Part shown: positions 1,531-53,014 of the stretch, in pieces
Layout of the letters: every line of letters starts with the position of its first letter
Numbering within the stretch: position 1 is the stretch's first letter
Assembly (NCBI GenBank): GCA_965240325.2
Contig: OZ251236.1
Coordinates: 124,001 to 188,000, forward strand
Length of the DNA: 64,000 bases
Source of the DNA: Rebecca billardiae RCC1528
Lineage: Eukaryota; Protista; Haptophyta
Direction: 5' to 3'
Notes under the pieces: model-generated
What the model was told of the DNA's origin: nothing
The model's input: only the letters and a program-made list of their open reading frames with translations
The model's database searches: none
Position numbers and translations under genes: made by a program

Positions 1531-1771
1531 TACGCGTAGCTGCGCTGCTACAGATCGCGACTACAGATCGATAGTATATGAGTACGGCGGTAGTCCGGGT
1601 GGGGCGGACTTGCCGGCCATCAGCAACTCGCGTCATCATCACGCATGCTAGCTGGCGACGACTCACTGACTGCTACGAGCAGACAGCAGGTCTACAGTTT
1701 ACTAAGTCTAAGAATAAGAGACGCACACAGCTCAGGCAGGCGAGATTGACGCCCGTTTTTTTTATATTTGT

Positions 1772-2492
1772 TGTTGAGCTGACGCAGCCTGGGGCGCGCA
1801 TCTCAGCAGATGGCGTCGCCGCTGGGACGTCAGGGCCGGCGCCGCACCAGGCGGGCCGGCGGCATCAGCTACGCAGTGGCTGGCTCTGGCGGCGCGCGCG
1901 CGCGGCGCGCGCGGCGGCAGGAGCGCGAGCGCAGCAGCGCTGGCGCGGAGCGACGTGGACGCGGAGCGCGGACGCGGCAGCGCGGACGCGGAGCGACACG
2001 GACGCGGCGCGTGCGCGGGCGGTACGGCCCGGCGCACGCGGCACGGATGGCACGCCGGCGGCACAGGCGGGCGCCATCGTGGAAGAGTCCAAGGAACAAC
2101 GGACTCGATCACTTCATTCATGGACGCCCGGATTCTCAGTTTTGAGAATCGAGAATCCGGGATCATGGGTCCGTGCGCAGCTTACCCAGGTCCGATGACA
2201 TTACCGAGTACCTGGGGGAAAGATGAGCTTACGGCGGTGCGTCGGTAACGCCTGCGATTGGCGGACGCACGGAAGCGGGGCTCAGGAAGGTTACAAGATT
2301 CCCGAGCCGGGCCGCAAAACGCCGTGTCACCCTGCGCAACCGAAAGTTGGTTGCGGCAGGAGGATTAGCTTCGCTCGTCAGAGGAGCGAGGGTCGAGATT
2401 GCCTTCGTGGGCGTCACCGACGACGCGCCCGAGGACGTGCCGGTGAGCTTTTAGCAGGGCTCGAGACGCTCGGAGCTCGCGTTTACCCAATA
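1772..2492 (+). repeat. 5' LTR (TGTTG...CAATA)
   Basis: Direct repeat of 8425-9145; ORF-track translations of the two copies are identical. Confidence 0.95.
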
Positions 2493-2548
2493 TGCATGCA
2501 GCGATCGGGAGGGATCGTACGCGCGGCGCTTTCTCATCGATCGCGCCG

Positions 2549-5116
2549 ATGGGCACGAGCGGCCGGATGCACGGCTCGGTCGACGTGGGGATGCTCAACG
2601 ACAAGGGCAATCAGCAGCGCTGGCTCGCGCAATCGGCGAGCAGGCTGGCGGCGCTTCCGGCGGGGCAAGGTGCTACGATGTCCGCACTGAACGGCATCAT
2701 CGTGACGCACGGCCCGAACGCGGAGCACCGCATCAACACGCTCGAGGAGTACAACTCGACGTGGGAGACATTCAACCCATCCGCGGCGAAGATGATCAAG
2801 GTCAGTGCCGAGCGGATGGACCTGGCGCGTGAGAACTACGCGCTGCAGCAGCGGCTGCTCGACCATCGCCACGAGCACGAGCGCCGCGAGCACGCCGAGC
2901 GCCGGGCCGCGGCGGAACGCGCGGCGGCGGCGGCGGGGGCGAGGCAGGCGCCAAGCTACGCGCAGGCTGCCTCGGCGGGCGCGGGGAGTGGTTTAGCCAC
3001 TCCGGGCGGCCCGACGGCGACCGGACCGGGTTCAGGTCCGGCGGCGGGCGGCGGATCCGGAATTTTTCCGGGTCCGGCGGCCGGTACACCCGGTCCGGGT
3101 GTGGGCACAGGCGGCGCGGCAGGTGCGCCGGCTGGGACTGACGGCGCGACGCCTGTGGGCGGCGCCGGCGTCGGCGCGGTGCCTACGGGCGGCGCCGGCG
3201 GGATCGGTGGCGCGGCGCCCGCGGGCGGCGCTGCCGTGACGCTCGATCCGCGCGCGCGCGAGCTCTACCGCCGCGAGCGCGAGACCGAGGAACAGATGTA
3301 TGAGCGGCAGGCGAGCGAGCACGCCATGCTGGACATCAAGCTCCGACAGAGCGTGTTGGAGGCAGCGCCGGACGGCGACGAGGCGGACCCCGCCAAGTAC
3401 GCCGGGGCGCAGTACGAGAAAGGGACGGCTTTCTTACGCACCGAGCTGCGGTCGTGGGTGACGGAGGCTGCGTGGCAGCACATCAACCGCCTCATGGAGA
3501 CGCAGCCGGAGGTGCAGGAGGAGCGCGCGCGCCTGGGCGCACTTACGCCGGGGCGCGAGTTCCTGTACCTGTGGAAGGCGATCCTGCGCATGCGCAAGCC
3601 CGACGACATGCGGAAGTACATGTCGGTGCGGGCACGCTGGCATCGGACGGTCCTGCCGGACTGCGGCAAGGACGGCGTCGGCGCACTCGAGCTCTTCCAG
3701 GTGCTACAGCACAACCACGTGCTGCTGCAGGAGCTGAGTGACGCAGCGCCAGCGGCGGAGATGCTTGCGCGGCTCATCGAGTTCATTCCGTCGGTGGGCG
3801 CGGGCATCGAGATGCGGACGCGGTACGAGTCGAAGGACTACAGGACCGTGACGAACTTCGACGTGCAGGAGCTCGTGCACGAGCTCAACGGCAAGTTCGA
3901 GGACCGGGACTTCTCCAAGGGCAAGCGGATTGACCGCGGCGGCCCTGGGCGCCCAGGGGCGGGTGGCCGCACGCCAGGAGGCGGCGGCGCTACCCGCGCG
4001 CACCCAATCGACGGGCTCCGCCTGGCGCAGGCGGCGGCGGCGTCGGCGGGTGGTGGCGGCGGCGGCGACGCGACGTCGCCGGCTGGCCGTGGTGGCGGCG
4101 GCGGAGGTCGCGGCGGCGGCGGTGGCGGCGGTGCTGGCCGCGGCACCGGCCGCGGAGGCCACGGCGACTCCGACGACGCGCACGGGCCGCGCTGCTACAA
4201 GTGCGGCGCCGTGGGGCACATCAAGCGTTACTGCCCGCAGGTGACGCAGGCTGATCGCGACTCGAACGCTGGCGATGACGCGGCGTCGACGCGGTCGGAT
4301 CGCAGCCGTGGCTCACTGCGGAGCGGCGGCAGCGGTGGCGGCGGCGGCAGCGGGGGGAGCACCCGCGCCGTGGTCGGTAATGGCAACGGCGGCGGCACGG
4401 TCCGCACGCAGGTCGCGTTCGCTCCCGAGCAGGGTGACGAGCCCGACGGCGCCGTTGGTGGCGACGGTGGCGCAGACGCCGGAGACGGCGGCGGCACCGG
4501 CGCCGGACTCGGCTTGGCGCCTATTGGCGCGGCTATCGGCGGCAGGGCGCAGCGCGACGAGGACATCGAGATCGTCGCGGCGCGGGCGGCCGAGGCACGC
4601 GTGGCGCAGCCGGAGGACAACACGCGGGCGTTGGTGTTTGACACTGGCGCACGGAAGAACATCGCCATGACCGAGGATTTGACGAACCTTACCCCGGTGC
4701 ACGGCGCATGCCAGATCGAGTGGGGGAACGGTGCGCGGGAGCAGGTCACTCACCGCGGGACCCTGGTGGTCAAGCTTGCGGCGGACGACGACAGCGACAA
4801 GGTCCTCACGCTCGAGATCGAGGCGTGGGCGTCGCAGCGCGTCACGGCGCCGCTGCTGTCGGTCGAGCACTGCGCGGACGCAGGCATCGAGTTCCACTAC
4901 TCGCAGCGCGGCAACACTGCGGACTTTACGGCGCTGGGAGGCGGCGTCGTGCAGCTGCCGCGCGATTCCACGCTGCGCGCCGAGATCGTACGGCGCCAGG
5001 TGGGGCCAGACGTCGGCGATGCGCCGGCGGAGGCGCGCGCACGGCGCAGGGCGCCAGTGCGGCGCGTGGGCGCGGGGCGGGGGCGCATTGGCGCTGCGCC
5101 GCCCCCAAACGCCTAA
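2549..5116 (+). CDS. gag: copia Gag-protease ORF (start uncertain; in-frame ATGs at 2492 and 2549)
   Basis: CCHC knuckle CYKCGAVGHIKRYC; aspartic protease motif LVFDTGA followed by GNG...V...G.L and LLSV; stop TAA at 5114-5116. Confidence 0.9.
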   Translation: MGTSGRMHGSVDVGMLNDKGNQQRWLAQSASRLAALPAGQGATMSALNGIIVTHGPNAEHRINTLEEYNSTWETFNPSAAKMIKVSAERMDLARENYALQQRLLDHRHEHERREHAERRAAAERAAAAAGARQAPSYAQAASAGAGSGLATPGGPTATGPGSGPAAGGGSGIFPGPAAGTPGPGVGTGGAAGAPAGTDGATPVGGAGVGAVPTGGAGGIGGAAPAGGAAVTLDPRARELYRRERETEEQMYERQASEHAMLDIKLRQSVLEAAPDGDEADPAKYAGAQYEKGTAFLRTELRSWVTEAAWQHINRLMETQPEVQEERARLGALTPGREFLYLWKAILRMRKPDDMRKYMSVRARWHRTVLPDCGKDGVGALELFQVLQHNHVLLQELSDAAPAAEMLARLIEFIPSVGAGIEMRTRYESKDYRTVTNFDVQELVHELNGKFEDRDFSKGKRIDRGGPGRPGAGGRTPGGGGATRAHPIDGLRLAQAAAASAGGGGGGDATSPAGRGGGGGGRGGGGGGGAGRGTGRGGHGDSDDAHGPRCYKCGAVGHIKRYCPQVTQADRDSNAGDDAASTRSDRSRGSLRSGGSGGGGGSGGSTRAVVGNGNGGGTVRTQVAFAPEQGDEPDGAVGGDGGADAGDGGGTGAGLGLAPIGAAIGGRAQRDEDIEIVAARAAEARVAQPEDNTRALVFDTGARKNIAMTEDLTNLTPVHGACQIEWGNGAREQVTHRGTLVVKLAADDDSDKVLTLEIEAWASQRVTAPLLSVEHCADAGIEFHYSQRGNTADFTALGGGVVQLPRDSTLRAEIVRRQVGPDVGDAPAEARARRRAPVRRVGAGRGRIGAAPPPNA

Positions 5117-5211
5117 GCCCGGAACCCGCGCAGGTGCGAACCACAAACACTACGGAGGCGGCGCGAGGCGCTGATCCGGCGTGGTTGCGCACTTGGTCGG
5201 TTCGAACGGGC
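5104..5211 (+). promoter_or_regulatory. Candidate -1 programmed ribosomal frameshift signal
   Basis: In-frame X_XXY_YYZ heptamer C_CCA_AAC (5104-5110), 6-nt spacer, then a long imperfect stem-loop (5117-5144 pairing with 5181-5211). Confidence 0.75.
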
Positions 5212-8200
5212 ACCAATGACCAACGTCTACTCGAGCGCACGCGACGCGTGGCCGAGGGGATGGAGGGGGCGAACGCGCGGCGTGAGTCGCTCGACGAGCA
5301 GTCGGCGGCGGGCATGACGCGGCGGCCGTTCGCGGACGCAATGCCGACGGCGCACTACCCTGGGCAGGTGACGCACGTCGACATCTTCTCCATGGCACGC
5401 ATCGACTTACCAGTTGGGGCCGATGGCGCGCGTGGAGGGTATCCTCATGGGATCATATTCATCGATGGGCATTCACGTCGATGGCAAGTGTACGCGCTAC
5501 GCAGCTTGGATGACGCCGAGGTTGGTCGGGCATTCCGCTGGTACGCGCAGTTGCTTGGTACAGGGGCCATGCACATGTCGCATTGGGTCCTGGCGTCGGG
5601 GTGTACTATGGCGCGACGCCATATTCACACCGACGGTGGCTCGACGCTGCTGAGTACGTACGTCGAGGGTGAGCTGGCGAAGCTTGGGTTCTCGTCGACG
5701 GTCACGTCGGCGCCCGACTCGCCGAGCTCGAATGGCGTGGCGGAACGCGCTATCCGCACGCTGAAGTCGAGACTGCGCGCCACGGTCGTTGCGCGTGGAG
5801 TCTCGAGGGTCGATTGGCACTACGCGGCGTGGCACGCATGCGCGTCGCGCAATCGACTGGCGTCACGTGGTATCATTCGTGACGATGGCGACATTGAGTG
5901 GCTCACGCCGGATGAGCTGTTCTTTGGCAAACGCCCGACGTGGAAGCATCACGTGGCGTTTGGAGCGCGCTGCCGCGTGCTGATGCTGGGCGCACGGCGC
6001 AATGCATTGGGGCAGCTGAGGCAGCGCGCACTACCCGGACGTGTCTATCTCTGGGGTGGGCACGGCGTGCAGTGGCGCGGTACATGGCGCTACGTACTCG
6101 GGTACGTATGTCGTTTAGACGACGGACGTCTCGTTCACTCACGTGACGTACGCATCGACGAGACCGACCTGGTCGAGGGGGGGCACTCGTCGCTGGGCGC
6201 ACCTGACGGTGGCGCGTACGTGGGTGATGGTGACGGCGCCGCGGTAAGCGGCGGACTTCGTCCGGTCGGTGGTGACGCCGACTGTGAGGACGAGGACGGC
6301 GACGGCGGCGAGACGCCAGCCGACGCCGGGAATGACGACGCGACAGAGTTCGACGTCGGGTACGACGACGACGCAGATGCGTCAACGTCGGGGCGCGGGC
6401 GCAGCAGCGTGGACGCGGGACATCGCGGGTGCAGCAGCGCTGGCGCAGAGCCGTCGACGCCGACGCCGCAGGGCGGGCGTGACGGGGCAGGCGCGTCGAT
6501 GACGCAGCCGGGTCGGCAGGATCAGATACCGCCGACGGAATCACGGCGCGGGACCGCAGCAGATGCTGGCGGGTCGCCGCGCGGCGCAGACGGTGACGAC
6601 GGCGTGATCGAGGACGCGCCGCCGCCCGGTCTGGATATGGGACACGATCCGCTTCGCAGGGATCGGACATCGCGCCGACGGCCGCAGCTGCTTACTGCCG
6701 TCGTCAGCGCCGCGTCGGTGTTCCAGAAGATCAACGTGAAGGTGCCGACGAACTATCGCGAGGCGATGCGGTCGGCGGAGGCGCCCCAGTGGCAGGGCGC
6801 CATGCTCGAGCACTTGGAAGGTCACAAGTTGCTCGGCACCTCGGAGGAGGTGGTGGTTCCGGAGGGCACGCGGCTGTTGCCGAGCCAGTGGGTCTTTGAC
6901 GTGAAGTCGAACCCGGAGGGCGAGGTGACGCGCTTCAAGGCGCGGTCGGTGCTACTGGGGAACCTACAGCGGCCGGGGATCGACTTTCAGGAGGTCTTTG
7001 CTCCGACGATCCGGCCGGAACAAGTGCGACTACTCGTGGCGATCGCCGCTCAGCAGGCGGGCGCGAGAGTCGACTTGGGTGCAGCGTCGGTTGCGGCGCT
7101 GGGCATACTGTCGAAGGGCGACGTCAAGGACGCGTACCTCAACTCGGAGTTGAAGCCGGATGAGCGGCCTCTCTTCTCATTCCCGCCGGGCTACGTGCCG
7201 AGCACGCAGGCGCCGCCGGGGTACAAAGTCGTGGGCCGGAGCCTGAAGGCGTATCCGGGCCTACGCCAGTCTGGGCGCGCGTGGCATCGCACGCACCGCA
7301 CCCAGCTGCTCGCGCGCGGCTTCTCGGAGTGTCCGAGTGCGCCGTGCATCTACGTCAAGGAGTCGGCGCCGGGCGAGTTCATCATCGCGGGCGGCTTTGT
7401 CGACGACTTGCTGTTTCTCAACCTGACGCGCGACGCGCGCGCGGTGGAGAAGCTGGCGGCTGACCTGAAGGAGCATTACGAGATCAAGCTGAGTGAGCGG
7501 CTCGATAAGTTCCTGGGCGCCGTGTTTGAAGTTCATGACGACGGCATCCTGATGCATCTGGGGCCGTACGTCGAGAGCGTGCTTCAGCGGTTCGGTTTGA
7601 ACGCGAGCACGCCGGCGCGCACGCCGGAGCCGGCGGCGCGGGCGCAGCTGAGCGACGACGATGAGGCGTTGCTGCAGCGCGCGGAGATTGAGAACTACCA
7701 GGCGATGGTGGGATGTCTCATGTTTGCGATGGTCACGGCGCGGCCGGACATCGCGCACGCGGTGAACATGCTGACGCGACGCATGTCATGTCCGCGGGCG
7801 GTGGATCTGGTAAGTGCGAAGCGCGTGCTGCGCTACTTACGTGGATGCCCGCGATTGGGAATCTTGTTCAAGTTTGCGACAGATTCCGAGCACCCCGACC
7901 TACTTGCTTTCGCTGACTCCGATTGGGCAAGCAATCCGGTGGAGACCAAGGGCAGGTCGACGGGTGGATACATTGTGTTCTACAATGGGGCGCCGGTGTC
8001 GTGGCACAGCGGGCTGCAAGGTACAGTCTCGCTGAGCTCGACGGAGGCGGAGTACGTCGCGCTGAGCGATTGCTGCCGCGAGGTGAGCTACTTGCGGAGC
8101 ATACTCGAGTCCATGCGGCAGCCGCCGCGGGCCGCGACGGAGGTGCGAGAGGACAACAAGGGGGCTATCGACCTCGTGGAGAATCCTGTGCACCACAAGC

Positions 8201-8388
8201 GCTCGAAGCACATCGAGATCAAGCATCACTATGTGCGTGACGCGCAGGAGGGTGGCAAGGTGAAGGTGGTCAAGGTACACACCTCGCTCAACCACTCTGA
8301 CATCATGACGAAGGCGACGGACGGTGCGACGTTCAAGCGGCACGTCGACGCCATCATGGTGGACCGACACCCGACGCGCGCGCGGTAA
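5104..8388 (+). CDS. pol: copia integrase-RT-RNase H ORF, in the -1 frame relative to gag-PR
   Basis: IN: HVDI, HTDGG, SNGVAERAIRTL; RT: WVFDVK, RFKAR, DVKDAYL, GLRQSGRAW, FVDDLL; RH: FADSDWA, SSTEAEY, EDNKGA, KHIEIKHH. Confidence 0.95.
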   Translation, partial: PKRLSPEPAQVRTTNTTEAARGADPAWLRTWSVRTGTNDQRLLERTRRVAEGMEGANARRESLDEQSAAGMTRRPFADAMPTAHYPGQVTHVDIFSMARIDLPVGADGARGGYPHGIIFIDGHSRRWQVYALRSLDDAEVGRAFRWYAQLLGTGAMHMSHWVLASGCTMARRHIHTDGGSTLLSTYVEGELAKLGFSSTVTSAPDSPSSNGVAERAIRTLKSRLRATVVARGVSRVDWHYAAWHACASRNRLASRGIIRDDGDIEWLTPDELFFGKRPTWKHHVAFGARCRVLMLGARRNALGQLRQRALPGRVYLWGGHGVQWRGTWRYVLGYVCRLDDGRLVHSRDVRIDETDLVEGGHSSLGAPDGGAYVGDGDGAAVSGGLRPVGGDADCEDEDGDGGETPADAGNDDATEFDVGYDDDADASTSGRGRSSVDAGHRGCSSAGAEPSTPTPQGGRDGAGASMTQPGRQDQIPPTESRRGTAADAGGSPRGADGDDGVIEDAPPPGLDMGHDPLRRDRTSRRRPQLLTAVVSAASVFQKINVKVPTNYREAMRSAEAPQWQGAMLEHLEGHKLLGTSEEVVVPEGTRLLPSQWVFDVKSNPEGEVTRFKARSVLLGNLQRPGIDFQEVFAPTIRPEQVRLLVAIAAQQAGARVDLGAASVAALGILSKGDVKDAYLNSELKPDERPLFSFPPGYVPSTQAPPGYKVVGRSLKAYPGLRQSGRAWHRTHRTQLLARGFSECPSAPCIYVKESAPGEFIIAGGFVDDLLFLNLTRDARAVEKLAADLKEHYEIKLSERLDKFLGAVFEVHDDGILMHLGPYVESVLQRFGLNASTPARTPEPAARAQLSDDDEALLQRAEIENYQAMVGCLMFAMVTARPDIAHAVNMLTRRMSCPRAVDLVSAKRVLRYLRGCPRLGILFKFATDSEHPDLLAFADSDWASNPVETKGRSTGGYIVFYNGAPVSWHSGLQGTVSLSSTEAEYVALSDCCREVSYLRSILESMRQPPRAATEVREDNKGAIDLVENPVHHKRSKHIEIKHHYVRDAQEGGKVKVVKVHTSLNHSDIMTKATDGATFKRHVDAIMVDRHPTRAR

Positions 8389-8424
8389 GCGGCGCAGCTC
8401 GCGGCTATGGCTGTCGAGGGGGGG

Positions 8425-9145
8425 TGTTGAGCTGACGCAGCCTGGGGCGCGCATCTCAGCAGATGGCGTCGCCGCTGGGACGTCAGGGCCGGCGCCGCAC
8501 CAGGCGGGCCGGCGGCATCAGCTACGCAGTGGCTGGCTCTGGCGGCGCGCGCGCGCGGCGCGCGCGGCGGCAGGAGCGCGAGCGCAGCAGCGCTGGCGCG
8601 GAGCGACGTGGACGCGGAGCGCGGACGCGGCAGCGCGGACGCGGAGCGACACGGACGCGGCGCGTGCGCGGGCGGTACGGCCCGGCGCACGCGGCACGGA
8701 TGGCACGCCGGCGGCACAGGCGGGCGCCATCGTGGAAGAGTCCAAGGAACAACGGACTCGATCACTTCATTCATGGACGCCCGGATTCTCAGTTTTGAGA
8801 ATCGAGAATCCGGGATCATGGGTCCGTGCGCAGCTTACCCAGGTCCGATGACATTACCGAGTACCTGGGGGAAAGATGAGCTTACGGCGGTGCGTCGGTA
8901 ACGCCTGCGATTGGCGGACGCACGGAAGCGGGGCTCAGGAAGGTTACAAGATTCCCGAGCCGGGCCGCAAAACGCCGTGTCACCCTGCGCAACCGAAAGT
9001 TGGTTGCGGCAGGAGGATTAGCTTCGCTCGTCAGAGGAGCGAGGGTCGAGATTGCCTTCGTGGGCGTCACCGACGACGCGCCCGAGGACGTGCCGGTGAG
9101 CTTTTAGCAGGGCTCGAGACGCTCGGAGCTCGCGTTTACCCAATA
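8425..9145 (+). repeat. 3' LTR
   Basis: Direct repeat of 1772-2492, immediately after the polypurine tract. Confidence 0.95.
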
Positions 9146-9297
9146 TTTGTTTTAACGTGCGTAAGGCTCACGGCAGGTGGCAGGTTGCCGCGCCATCCTT
9201 CATCGCACGCTCTCCGAAGAGAGACCTGGAAACTGGTTTGAACCCATGACCTCAGACGCAAGAGCACGCCAGTACTCCCACTCGGCCACAGACCGGC
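9146..9297 (-). mobile_element. tRNA-derived SINE-like element, 5' part; its 3' part lies at about 1692-1766 on the other side of the copia
   Basis: Minus-strand Pol III A box TGGCCGAGTGG (9278-9288) and B box GGTTCAAACC (9235-9244); no complete cloverleaf; continues into an A-rich tract across the copia TSD. Confidence 0.6.
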
Positions 9298-47954: not shown

Positions 47955-50900
47955 ATGGAGGACGACGCGGCGGACCGGCGCGGCTCGGGGTGGTTCGGCC
48001 GGCTCTCGGCGAGCCCGCTGGTGGGCAACGCGCGCGAGCTCGTGAGCACCGTCACGGCCAGCGCGAGCCACCTCGCGCGCGAGGCGCTCGCCGACGCGCT
48101 CGCGGAGGAGGACGAGGAGGGCGGCGCGATCGGCCGCGGCGCCGGCGCGCCGCAGACGGCGGAGGAGGTGGCCGTCGCCGCGGTCGCCGAGGCGGCGTCG
48201 CTCAAAGCGCAGCTGTACGCCATCGACGAGCAGCGCCAGACCGCCTTCGACGCGCAGCAGCGCCTGCTCGCCTCCGTGGAGCACGAGTTGGTCGACCGCG
48301 TCGGCGCGGACGCGCACGAGGACGTGCGCGCGTCGCTGGACAGCTGGGACGCGCTCGGCGTGGCGGGCACGCCGGTGCGTGGAGCGGAGGATGGCGACGG
48401 CGCCGCCGCGCGCCACGCCGGCGCGATCGCCGACGGCACCGCGCCCAACGGCAGCGCGCACGAGGCACTGGCCGAGGTGAGCCAAGCTGCGCCGCTGCGG
48501 CTGCCGCTGCCGCGCGCGCGCGCGCGCCGCGCGCCGCGCCGCCGCGTGCGCTGACGCGTGCCTGCCCGCGCGCGCGCCGCGCCGCCGCCACGCCTCGCGC
48601 GCAGGAGCTGCACGACGCGAGCGCCCGCCGCGAGGAGGCCGAGGCCGCGGCGCGCGCGGCCGCGGCCGAGGCGGCCGCACTGCGGGATGAGGTGGCGGCG
48701 TCGCGCGCGGCGACGGAGGCGGCGCAGGCGGCGGCGGCGCGCTCGGAGGAGGCGCGCGCGCAGGCGGAGGCGCGCGCGGAGGCCGAGGCGAGCCGCGCGC
48801 GCGCCGCCGCGCGCGTCGCCGCCGCGCGCGTCGCCGCCGCCGCGGCGTCGCCGCCGCCGCAGGGCGGCGGCGCGGCGGCGGCGGCGGGCGGCGGTGCCGC
48901 AGCGGCTGAGGCGGCCGCCACCGCGACGGCGGAGGCGGCGGAGGCAGCGGCGCGCGCGGAGCGCGCCGAGGCGGAGGCGGCCGAGCTCGCGCGCTCGGTC
49001 GAGGCCCTCCGCGCCGAGCTCAGCGCGGCGCGCGCCGAGCCGCGCGCCGCGTCGCCGCGCGCCGAGATCGCATCTCCCCAGATTGCGCCCGAGATCGCGG
49101 CGGTGAGCTTCGGCTCGCCGGAGGGCGCGCGCGGCGGCTTCGGCGCGCCGCGCACGCCGGCGGGCGCGAGCGTGGGGCTGGGCACGCCCTCCTCCGTCTC
49201 CGCCGCCGACGACGCGCTGCTCTCCCGCATCGAGGAGCTTCTGGCCGAGCGGCAGAAGCTGCATGCGAGCGCCGCGCATGAGCGCGCGGAGCTGGTCGCG
49301 GCGTGCGAGGCGCGGGTGGAGGCGGCGGGCGCGGCGGAGGCGGCGGCGCGCGAGGAGGCGGCGGAGGCGGTGCGCGAGGCGCGCCGCCGCGAGGCCGCCG
49401 CCGAGGCCGAGGCGGCCGCGCTCAAGCAGCAGCTCGCCGAGGCCGAGGCGGCCGCGGCCGCGGCGGCGGAGCGCGCGGCCGCGGCCGAGGCGGCCGCGGC
49501 CGCGGCGCGCGCCGACGCGGTGCGCGAGCGCGAGGCGGCGTCGTCTGTCGAGGCCGAGCGCGCCGACGCCGCGCTCGAGGCCGCGCGCGCCGACGCCGCC
49601 GCCGCCGCCGCCGAGCGCGACGAGGCGAGGGCGGCGGCGGAGGCGCAGGCGGCGCGCGCCGCCGAGCTCCAAGCCGCGGTGGAGCGCGCGCGCGCCGAAG
49701 CGGCCGAGGCGGCGTCTGCGCTGGAGGGCGCGCGTGCGGAGGCGCGCGCGGCGCACGAGGCGTGCGACGGGCTGCGCGCCGAGCTGCGCGCCGCCGAGGA
49801 GACCGCCGCCGCCGAGTGGGCGCGCGCGGACGTGGCGGCCGAGGCCGCGCGCGAGGAGATGTCTCGCGCGCGCGCGGACGGCGCGGAGGCGGCGGCGGCG
49901 CTGGCGGGCGCGCGGGCGGAGGCGGCGGAGGCGCGCGCGCGCGCGGAGGCGCTCGCGGAGGCGAGCGCGACGGCGGAGGCGAGCGCGCGCGCCGAGCTCG
50001 CCGCGGCGGCCGAGGCTTCCGAGGGCGCGGCGCGCGCGGCGGCGGCCGAGGCGCGCGCGGAGGCGGAGGCGGCGGTGGCCGCCGCGCGCGCCTCCGCTGC
50101 TGACGCGATGGCCGCGGCGCGCGCGGAGGGCTCGGCGGCGCGCGAGGCGTTGGAGCAGGCGCGCGCCGAGCTCGGCGGCGCGGCGGCGCGCGCCGACGAG
50201 CTCGCGCGCGCCAAGGCCGCCGCGGAGGCCACGGCGCGCGAGACGGCGCGCGCGCTCGACGCCGCGCGCGCCGGCGCGGACGCGGCCGGCCGCGCGCTCG
50301 AAGGTGCACAGGCAGAGGCGGCGCGCGCGGGGTCGGAGGCGGGGGCGCGCGCGCGCGCGCTCGAGGCGCGCGTGGCTGAACTCGAGGCCGCGCTCGGCGC
50401 GGCGCGCGCCGACGCCGCGCGCGGCGCGGGCGAGGCGGGCTCGGCGCTCGCCGACGCGCGCGCCGACGCGGACGCGGCGCGCGCCGACGCGGCGCGCGCG
50501 GCCGACGGCGCGCGCGAGCGCGAGGCGGCGTTGCAAGAGGTGCTGCAGGAGGCGCGGCGCGCGCTGGAGGGCCGAGAGGCCGAGCTGGGCGAGGCGCGGC
50601 GCGAGGCGGCGGCCGCCGCCGAGGCGGCCGCTGCGGCCGACGCCGCCCGCACCGAGGCGGAGGCGGCGGCGGCGGAGGCGGCGGCAGAGGCGGCGGCGGC
50701 GGCGGAGTCGATTTCGATCCAGCTCGCCGCGGCGCGCGCCGACGCCGCCGCCGCCGCCTCGGCCGCCGAGGCGGCCGAGGCGTCGCGGGCGGAGGCGGCG
50801 GAGGCGTCCGCCGCGGCGTCCGCCGAGCGCGACGCCGCGCTGGCCGCCGCCGCCGCCGCCGCCGCTGAGCTCGCCGACGCGCGCCGAGCGCATGCGGGCG

Positions 50901-53014
50901 CCGTCGACTCGACCGCCGCCAAGCTCGCGGCCGCGGCGCGCGACGGCGCGGCCTCGGCCGCGCGCGCCGACGCGGCGGAGGCGGCGTTGGAGGCGGCGCG
51001 GCGCGAGACGGCGGAGGAGGGCGACGCCGCGCTGGCGGACGCGCGCGCCGCCGCGCACGCCGCGCGCGCCGAGGCCGACGCAGCGAGCGCGGCGCTGAGC
51101 GAGGCACGCACAGACGCGGAGGCGGCGCGGCGCGCGGCCGACGCGGCCGCCGCCGAGCTCGCCGCCGCGCGCGCCGCCGCGGCCGAGGCGGCGGAGGCGG
51201 CGGCCGCCGCGCTGGCGGACGCGCACGCGGCGGCGGCGGATGCGACGGCCGCGCTCGCCGAGACGCGCCAGGCCGCGGCCGAGGCGGCCGAGGCGCACGC
51301 CGCGCAGCTCGGCGCGGCGCGCGCCGACGCGGACGGCGCGCGAGAGGCGCACGCTGCCGCGGCGCGCGACGCGGCGGCCGCGGCCGAGGCGGCCGCGGCC
51401 GCGAGCGCGCAGCTCGCCGCCGCCGCCGCCGCCGCCGCGCGCTCGGCGGAGGATGGCGAAGAGGCGGAGGCGGGCGTCGGCGCGGCGGCCGAAGACGCGC
51501 CCGCCGCGATCGCTCGGCTCGGCGCCGAGCTCGCGCGCGCGCGCGCCGCGGCAGCCGCCGCGTCGGCCGCAGCCGAGGGCACGGGCGCGCGCGCGGTGGC
51601 GTTGGCGGAACAACTCGCGAGCGCGCGCGCCGCGGCGGAGGAGGCGGAGGCGCGCGCGGGCGCGGCGGAGGGCGAGGCGGCGCGCGCGTCGCGCGAGCTC
51701 TCCGCGCTGCGCGCGCGCGCCCTCGAGACCGAGGCGGCGATGGAGGCGCTCGACGCCGAGCTCGGCGCGGCCGCGGACGCGCGGCGCGGCGCGGAGGCGC
51801 AAGCGGAGTCGGCGCGCGGCGAGGCGTCGGCCGCGCGCGCGGAGGCTTCGGCGGCGCGCGCGGAGGCGGCGGAGGCGGCGGAGCGCGCGCGCGGCGCGGG
51901 CGGCGAGGCGGCCGAGCTGCGCGCCGCCGCCGCCGCGCACGCCTCCGCGCTCGACGCGATGGCCGAGGCGATGGAGGCGGCGCGCGCCGACGCGGCGGCG
52001 GCGGCGCGCGCCGCGCATGCCGACGCGGCCGCGGCCGCGCGCTCGCTCGGCGCCGCGCTCGCCGACGCGGACGGCGAGCTGGGCGCGGCGGCGGCGGCGG
52101 CGGCGCGCGAGGCGGCGGCGGCGGCGCACGCGAGCGCCGCCGCGCACGCCGCCGCCGCCGACGCCGCCGCCTCCGCCGCCGAGTCCGCAGAGCTGCACAC
52201 CGCACTCGCCTCCTCGCGCGCGGTCGTCGAGAGTGGTGGCGCGGACGCGGACATCAACAAGCGACTCGTGGCCGAGCTGCTGATTCGGCACCGCGCGGCC
52301 GAGCTGGGCGAGCCTGGCGCGGAGGCGCCGGGCGAGCAGGCGCTGTGCGTGCTCGCGTCCATGCTCAACTGCGACCCGGAGCAGCGCCGGCTCCTCGGCC
52401 TGGACGCGCGGCGCGGCGGCGGCGGCTGGCTCGGCAGCCTGCTCCGCGGCGGCGGCGGCGGCGGCGGCGGCGGCTCGGCGCGCGCCGCGGACGCGGAGGC
52501 GGTGTCGGCGGGCGCAAAGTCCATCGCGGACGCGTGGGTGGAGTACCTGGTCTCGGAGGCGGACGCGGACGAGGCGCGAGCAAAGGCCGAGGCGGCCGAG
52601 CGCGCCGCCGCCGCCGCGCGCGCCGCGCGCGCCGCCGGGCTCACGACCCCCAAGGCATCGCCGCCGCTCTCGGCCGCGCGCGGCGGCGGCGGCGGCGGCG
52701 GCGCGCCGCGCATGCCGGCTCTCGAGTTGGGCGGCGCGGCGGCGGGCGCGCCGCTTGCCGCGGCGGAGGCGGCGCGGCCGAGCGCCGACGCCGCCGCGCC
52801 GTCGGCGGGTGGCGGCGGCGCCGAGGCAGCCTCCACGGCACAGGCTGCGCCTGCGGCCGACGTCGTCGCACCCGCGGGCGACGCCATCGATGCATCTGCG
52901 GCCGCACCGGGACCGGCGGCGGCGGGCGGCGCGGACTCCTCCGAGTCCGAGCATGCGCCGGCGACGGCCGTGGCGCCGCATGACGACGCGCCCTCGGGCG
53001 CCGCGTCCGGCTAG
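47955..53014 (+). CDS. Golgin, GMAP-210/RUD3-like (very Ala-rich coiled coil plus GRAB/GA1-like C-terminus); intron 48477-48604
   Basis: N-terminal GWFG amphipathic motif; long coiled coil; DINKRLV.ELL...L.VLASML....EQR..LGL..GGGW, then SIADAWVEYL. Confidence 0.75.

Follow-up and report, generated by a model that had tools for sequence, protein, structure and literature searches.

In alpharetroviruses such as Rous sarcoma virus (RSV) and avian leukosis virus, the protease (PR) shares the gag frame, its synthesis thereby keeping pace with that of Gag, and ribosomes slip back by one nucleotide (-1) on a heptamer just before the gag-PR stop codon, ahead of a downstream RNA structure. Betaretroviruses and deltaretroviruses, such as mouse mammary tumor virus (MMTV), human T-cell leukemia virus type 1 (HTLV-1) and simian retrovirus 1 (SRV-1), use two successive shifts, gag-pro and then pro-pol, the second being a -1 slip where the protease gene ends; A_AAA_AAC and G_GGA_AAC are heptamers of retroviral gag-pro sites. 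In Ty1, Ty2 and Ty4 of the Ty1/copia superfamily, and in the copia-like element 1731 of Drosophila, PR is part of the Pol that is rationed. The -1 shift on X_XXY_YYZ followed by a 3' structure is presented as a textbook retroviral device, common also in animal Ty3/gypsy elements, in excerpts of PMC5009743, which further cover RSV frameshifting, the retroviral gag-pro sites and gag-pol frameshifting in 1731. For Ty1/copia, whose members are mostly portrayed as having one open reading frame (ORF), excerpts of PMC5580714 give a different set of strategies, namely a single ORF combined with splicing or degradation, the +1 shift of Ty1 and stop-codon bypass in Tca2; rationing of Pol by +1 ribosomal frameshifting in Ty1, Ty2 and Ty4 is found in the excerpts of both sources. 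Excess Gag is needed throughout the superfamily, including copia, BARE1, EVD and Ty5, which rely on splicing or degradation, and Tca2 with its bypass (excerpts of PMC5580714; PMC2194720). In the literature searched, which represented a 2003 recoding survey through later summaries, we found no report of a copia-type shift located 3' of the protease. Here we analyze a stretch of 64,000 nucleotides (nt) from the haptophyte Rebecca billardiae RCC1528 (assembly GCA_965240325.2, contig OZ251236.1, positions 124,001 to 188,000; henceforth the window), which contains a Ty1/copia element whose integrase and reverse transcriptase very probably depend on just such a shift.

The element, at 1772-9146 of the window, is an intact Ty1/copia retrotransposon with long terminal repeats (LTRs). 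Its domains run in the order Gag, PR, integrase (IN), reverse transcriptase (RT) and RNase H (RH), with IN lying 5' of RT, the arrangement that assigns an element to Ty1/copia. They are distributed over two frames, Gag-PR in the first (ORF1) and IN-RT-RH in the second (ORF2), which is -1 relative to ORF1 and open from 4642/4708 to 8388. An earlier, sequence-only reading of the window had put the protease motif DTGA in the gag frame, closed by a stop at 5116, and IN-RT-RH in the -1 frame; our ORF and domain analyses, in which ORF1 and ORF2 were treated separately, agree. The layout resembles that of alpharetroviruses in having PR at the end of the gag frame and a heptamer just before the gag-PR stop, with a predicted RNA structure downstream. 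In contrast to the alpharetroviral pol order RT-RH-IN, the order here is IN-RT-RH, so that the first domain past the slip is integrase, and whereas RSV uses A_AAU_UUA with a pseudoknot-like structure, the clade of the window element uses X_XXA_AAZ with a predicted long hairpin. The likeness to betaretroviruses and deltaretroviruses lies in the -1 slip proposed for the 3' end of the protease gene and in A_AAA_AAC and G_GGA_AAC, which the clade has in common with retroviral gag-pro sites; here, however, a single shift would suffice, with gag and PR in one frame. Ty1 differs in direction and place, shifting +1 on a 7-nt site that needs a rare tRNA, between gag and pol and 5' of PR, as against -1 and 3' of PR here. 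Single-ORF copia elements, including three families of the same genome, have no frame change at all.

The last codons of ORF1 read CCG CCC CCA AAC GCC TAA, and within them the heptamer C_CCA_AAC (5104-5110) stands in X_XXY_YYZ phase, a single codon separating its end from the stop at 5114-5116. Read directly from the codon phase, this bears out the sequence-only reading, and the heptamer is the only in-phase one in the 889-codon ORF1 frame. The minimum free energy (MFE) structure given by RNAfold is a single 95-nt hairpin that starts 6 nt past the heptamer and has a stability (-51.5 kcal/mol, z-score -3.8) equaled by 0 of 200 dinucleotide shuffles. The long stem that had been described at this distance was thereby recovered in both its parts, GCCCGGAACC/GGUUC-GAA-CGGGC and CAGGUGCGAACCAC/GUGGUU-G-CGCACUUG. 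Its 5' arm GCCCG lies in the linker between PR and IN, and its 3' arm CGGGC in the 'R-T-G' codons of the integrase N-terminal domain. The canonical sequence components of a eukaryotic -1 signal are thus present, namely a heptamer in the proper phase, a predicted structure within the usual distance of 5-9 nt downstream and ORF2 in the -1 frame.

We propose, as the sequence-only reading did, that these components direct a programmed -1 ribosomal frameshift where PR meets IN. Most ribosomes translating the genomic RNA would make an 874-amino-acid Gag-PR product and stop two codons past the heptamer, while a minority, held by the hairpin, would slip back by one nucleotide on C_CCA_AAC. Slippage would be in tandem, the peptidyl-tRNA(Pro) re-pairing from CCA to CCC and the aminoacyl-tRNA(Asn) from AAC to AAA, and the slipped ribosomes would read on into IN-RT-RH to yield a Gag-PR-IN-RT-RH fusion of ~1965 amino acids, a predicted size similar to that of the single-ORF polyproteins of the neighboring families. 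The conceptual -1 translation across the site is ...APKRLSPEP, and P-K-R-L-S, given earlier as the outcome of the slip, holds as such a translation; as the slip product it does not, because the A-site tRNA decodes AAC, so that tandem slippage would give the junction P-P-N/R-L-S. Given the ORF layout, every translating ribosome would produce Gag-PR, and IN-RT-RH would require a slip, which would move the rationing of Pol relative to Gag from the gag/PR to the PR/IN boundary and leave the protease made in step with Gag.

A break in frame next to a C5 homopolymer might reflect mutational decay, or else an assembly or homopolymer artifact in that run, with the functional element having a single gag-pol ORF as do three other copia families of this genome (L035, L036 and L037; 1923-2289 amino acids). 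However, when the complete assembly of 72 Mb was searched with the DNA sequence, it gave at least 39 copies of the element in two subfamilies, 98-100% and ~95% identical, and in all 30 copies fetched from both subfamilies (95-100% identical) the heptamer, spacer and stop are unchanged. Internal indels among the copies are all multiples of three; of 29 copies, 28 have an open ORF1 part and all 29 an open ORF2 part. Third positions of the ORF1 frame account for 58 of 107 variable sites upstream of the overlap and for 12 of 22 within the overlap before the heptamer, and past the heptamer it is third positions of the ORF2 frame that do so (8 of 11, then 50 of 86), implying that the frame under purifying selection switches at the heptamer. 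Assembled contigs from two samples of different studies show neither substitution nor indel at 5104-5116 and no indel in the C5 run, and the LTRs are identical (722 nt at 100%), as had been noted. The same -1 arrangement, with other heptamers, recurs in twelve further lineages, comprising a second family of this genome and lineages taken from Illumina-type assemblies (metagenome and Logan), and PR and IN were not seen in one frame in any of the 13 lineages of the clade. A decay mutation or assembly error is thus excluded for practical purposes, in line with the earlier reading; we assign it a negligible probability. The hairpin is also retained between the subfamilies: subfamily B has a 30-nt in-frame insertion that is confined to the apical loop and forms a small stem of its own, A5140G converts an A-U pair to G-U, and G5187A falls in a bulge.

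To place the element among its relatives we used a genome-wide search with Pfam RVT_2, which separates several copia families, among them the three single-ORF families and family D (L032-L034 and L038-L044), whose IN-RT-RH is 44-51% identical in amino acids to that of the window element. At its PR/IN junction family D reads G_GGA_AAC GAG TAG; a hairpin of -70.6 kcal/mol (z -3.9) comes next, and this slip site is identical in 10 of 10 loci. Protein searches additionally recovered 'ORF2-only' proteins of 944-1257 amino acids with 35-57% identity, encoded on contigs of metagenome and SRA assemblies with 49-63% GC, and in these external lineages (L050-L062) ORF2 is always in the -1 frame of the upstream ORF. 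Counting the window element, family D and 11 external lineages, with amino-acid identities of 35-65%, an in-phase X_XXA_AAZ heptamer precedes the ORF1 stop by 0-10 codons in 12 of 13 lineages, so that the same arrangement recurs with different canonical heptamers (CCCAAAC, GGGAAAC, GGGAAAG, GGGAAAU and AAAAAAC) at the same place. Among the external lineages, G_GGA_AAG directly adjoins the stop (0 codons) in L050/L051 and L052, and G_GGA_AAC does so in L060 and L061, being separated from it by four codons in L056 and five in L053; A_AAA_AAC precedes the stop by two (L054), eight (L057) or nine codons (L055), and G_GGA_AAU by five (L062). Elsewhere in the ORF1s of these lineages, 6376 codons hold 3 such heptamers, and the other two phases of the same near-stop stretches contain none. 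Were the lineages independent, the binomial probability would be ~5e-27, and chance does not appear to be a reasonable explanation of the near-stop heptamers.

The same comparison bears on two other ways in which ORF2 might be expressed. It could be translated without frameshifting, by termination-reinitiation, internal initiation or from a subgenomic RNA, to give a separate IN-RT-RH protein. In L062 (425-431) the ORF1 stop and an ORF2-frame AUG do overlap as AUGA, a possible termination-reinitiation site beside the G_GGA_AAU heptamer, and in relatives gene callers place ATG or alternative starts for ORF2. The called starts, however, are at non-homologous positions, and the window element has no AUG near the ORF1 stop, the first in-frame one lying inside the integrase N-terminal domain; no conserved AUG was found at the start of the IN-coding part in the window element and its relatives. 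Separate translation would also leave the in-phase heptamer of 12 of 13 lineages unexplained, and an unfused Pol would escape the usual packaging into particles, so we consider this route unlikely. Alternatively, the frames could be joined in the RNA, either through slippage of the RNA polymerase along the C5A3 or A6 runs or through excision of a small intron. The A6 run of AAAAAAC, present in three lineages, belongs to a kind that can support polymerase slippage, but in the majority of lineages GGG or CCC is followed by no more than A3, a run too short for the polymerase to stutter efficiently. The strict X_XXY_YYZ phase and the lack of off-phase heptamers are traits of tRNA re-pairing rather than of polymerase slippage, and the exact 6-nt spacing between heptamer and stem likewise fits ribosomal frameshifting. 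As for an intron, copia, BARE and EVD splice to set their Gag:Pol ratio (excerpts of PMC5580714), but contigs spanning 4600-5600, which are themselves probably derived from DNA, contain no joints. Joining of the frames in the RNA appears to us improbable, and a programmed ribosomal shift remains the better account of the site.

The RNA structure provides a further line of evidence. The middle of the hairpin being too variable to align with MAFFT, the count of pairs, done by script, covers the closing stem. In each of six sequences, drawn from five lineages (the window subfamilies A and B, L050, L052, L060 and L061) GCCCG starts exactly 6 nt past the heptamer, and its partner CGGGC sits in the 'R-T/A-G' codons of the integrase N-terminal domain; these predicted hairpins span 56-125 nt. 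The five outer pairs are invariant and thus uninformative on covariation, and the sixth pair, U-A in L050 and L061 and C-G in L052, shows a two-sided change. Beyond the GAA bulge the stem continues in lineage-specific fashion, with GAACC/GGUUC in the window element as against GGG/CUC in L060. Although the 5' arm encodes different peptides (LSPE, GGPS, SRPP, ISPG, SRPS), its nucleotides xGC CCG do not vary, suggesting that it is the RNA that is constrained. In family D, L054, L055 and L057, strong stems of other kinds begin 6-7 nt past the heptamer. The stem for which a test of covariation had been suggested is thus kept, with one compensatory pair and extensions particular to individual lineages, and the comparative checks proposed with the sequence-only reading were all favorable to it.

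Several observations weigh against a programmed frameshift as the common explanation. The two-sided compensatory change is limited to one stem pair. When relatives were scored on arbitrary 120-nt windows, L050 (z -0.1) and L060 (z -0.4) were not significant, and the 120-nt fold of L056 showed no convincing structure (z +1.3). No canonical heptamer was found in L059, the only such lineage of the 13, and two lineages use G_GGA_AAG, although AAG as the A-site codon slips poorly in eukaryotes, as reticulocyte-lysate work has indicated. The lineages share ancestry, so the figure of 5e-27 overstates their independence. Finally, a search of sequencing runs found no RNA run holding the element. What is read directly from the sequence is how the ORFs are laid out, the conserved signal and the change of the selected frame at the heptamer; slippage itself and its efficiency are inferred. 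Taking both sides together, we place the probability that the PR/IN boundary is the site of a programmed -1 ribosomal frameshift at roughly 0.87.

A quick maximum-likelihood tree of RT-RH unites the 16 sequences that are ORF2-only or have the frameshift arrangement in a single clade, with a support of 100 in the Shimodaira-Hasegawa-like approximate likelihood ratio test (SH-aLRT), and the sister of this clade is the single-ORF family L037 of the same genome (SH-aLRT 96). The tree fits a single origin of the frameshift arrangement. With the same confidence, we take the frame shift to be an inherited and selected feature of the whole copia clade, in this alga and in environmental eukaryotes.

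Individual members of the clade display further peculiarities. In L059 (2547-2600), G_GGG_GAA is followed by a G-rich 6-nt spacer and a perfect 12-bp hairpin, the 3-nt loop of which is the ORF1 stop UAA. L057 and L058, both 5964 nt, are the same element in circularly permuted form on Logan contigs from different runs, which looks like the result of the two LTRs having been merged during assembly to give a circle. In L054, L056, L058 and L062, a 'third ORF' past ORF2 is probably gag again. The catalytic triplet of the protease departs from D-T/S-G in L053 (DTQ, 1941-2630), L057 (DSQ, 2226-2765) and family D (DSA, L032:3961-4470), all of which look intact, family D being also multicopy. In L052 (1-651) and L062 (3-431) no protease is evident in the 142-216 amino acids before the stop, the stretch in L052 being a coiled-coil-like Gag tail, and yet the heptamer, the stop and a -1 IN-RT-RH are kept; these two may have lost PR or carry it elsewhere.

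The integrase of the clade is unusual in its N-terminal segment (5170-5335 in the window), which has the pattern W..W..R.G.. and, in every clade member, lacks the His/Cys ligands of the HHCC zinc finger. This motif is usual in the Ty1/copia superfamily, though not its defining trait. The N-terminal domain of the clade gave no match to PF13976. The ligands are missing also in the single-ORF sister L037 and are canonical in L035 and L036. We considered the hairpin, which is closed by codons of this segment, as the cause of the loss, and rejected it since L037, with a single ORF, is likewise devoid of the ligands.

Table 1. Features of the Ty1/copia element, in window coordinates
Feature	Position	Strand	Remarks
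Target-site duplication TTTGT, left copy	1767..1771	+	flanks at both LTR ends; right copy 9146-9150
5' LTR	1772..2493	+	722 nt, 100% identity to 8425-9146
ORF1: Gag and retropepsin-like protease	2492..5116	+	CCHC knuckle ~4190-4240; DTGA 4640-4651; TAA 5114-5116
Slippery heptamer C_CCA_AAC	5104..5110	+	X_XXY_YYZ phase of ORF1; identical in 30/30 copies
6-nt spacer: GCC and ORF1 stop TAA	5111..5116	+	sequence read
Predicted frameshift-stimulating hairpin	5117..5211	+	MFE -51.5 kcal/mol, z -3.8
-1-frame coding part IN-RT-RNase H	5104..8388	+	RVT_2 at 6850-7626; stop 8386-8388
Polypurine tract GAGGGGGGG	8416..8424	+	directly 5' of 3' LTR
3' LTR	8425..9146	+	722 nt, 100% identity to 5' LTR

The remaining features of the element (Table 1), whose left LTR begins with TG, are those of an active-looking, young copy. 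The first ATG of ORF1, at 2492, lies across the boundary at which the 5' LTR ends, in a frame that is open already from 2447. The domain assignments rest on several kinds of searches, since a Pfam scan of whole ORFs missed both PR and IN, which were recovered by segment or profile searches. In ORF1, the zinc knuckle corresponds to zf-CCHC (PF00098) and the protease motif reads VFDTGA; a profile of the C-terminal region of ORF1 built from 10 lineages matches PF22936 (Pol_BBD), the copia protease barrel, in 6 of the 10 members (best E 9.8e-6), and a retroviral-like aspartic protease in PDB with E ~1e-3. ORF2 has the D,D,E motifs of integrase, RVT_2 (PF07727; a score of 115 bits, the cut-off being 31.6, and of 118.5 bits when the whole genome was searched) and RNase H as its tail, its integrase consisting of the degenerate N-terminal domain, the DDE core and an SH3-like domain. 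In the relatives, rve (the integrase core) and SH3_retrovirus were detected in the heads of ORF2, with L054 exceeding the cut-off. The surrounding window varies from 54 to 87% GC across 2-kb bins, its compositional extreme being 48001-52000, with a G+C content of 84-87% and a strongly positive AT skew of 0.23-0.34.

Taken together, we think it likely that a previously undescribed, deep Ty1/copia clade of algae and microbial eukaryotes has moved the rationing of Pol to the PR/IN boundary by means of a -1 shift, with a hairpin closed by the codons of a zinc-finger-less integrase, and has thereby converged on the gag-pro/pol layout of alpharetroviruses, some of its members having DTQ, DSQ or DSA in the protease or lacking the protease. 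Annotation pipelines would call such elements 'frameshifted' or degraded, or would split them into two genes, a splitting already seen in the ORF2-only proteins of databases. The clade also offers a set of natural variants of -1 signals, with CCC, GGG or AAA as the X triplet, three different Z bases, spacers of 6-7 nt and stems of 56-125 nt, drawn from GC-rich protists, in which recoding has barely been studied. As an independent example of the gag-pro/pol arrangement, it would be useful for relating protease dosage to particle maturation. For the Pseudoviridae it would add a further expression strategy, a retrovirus-style -1 signal placed 3' of the protease.

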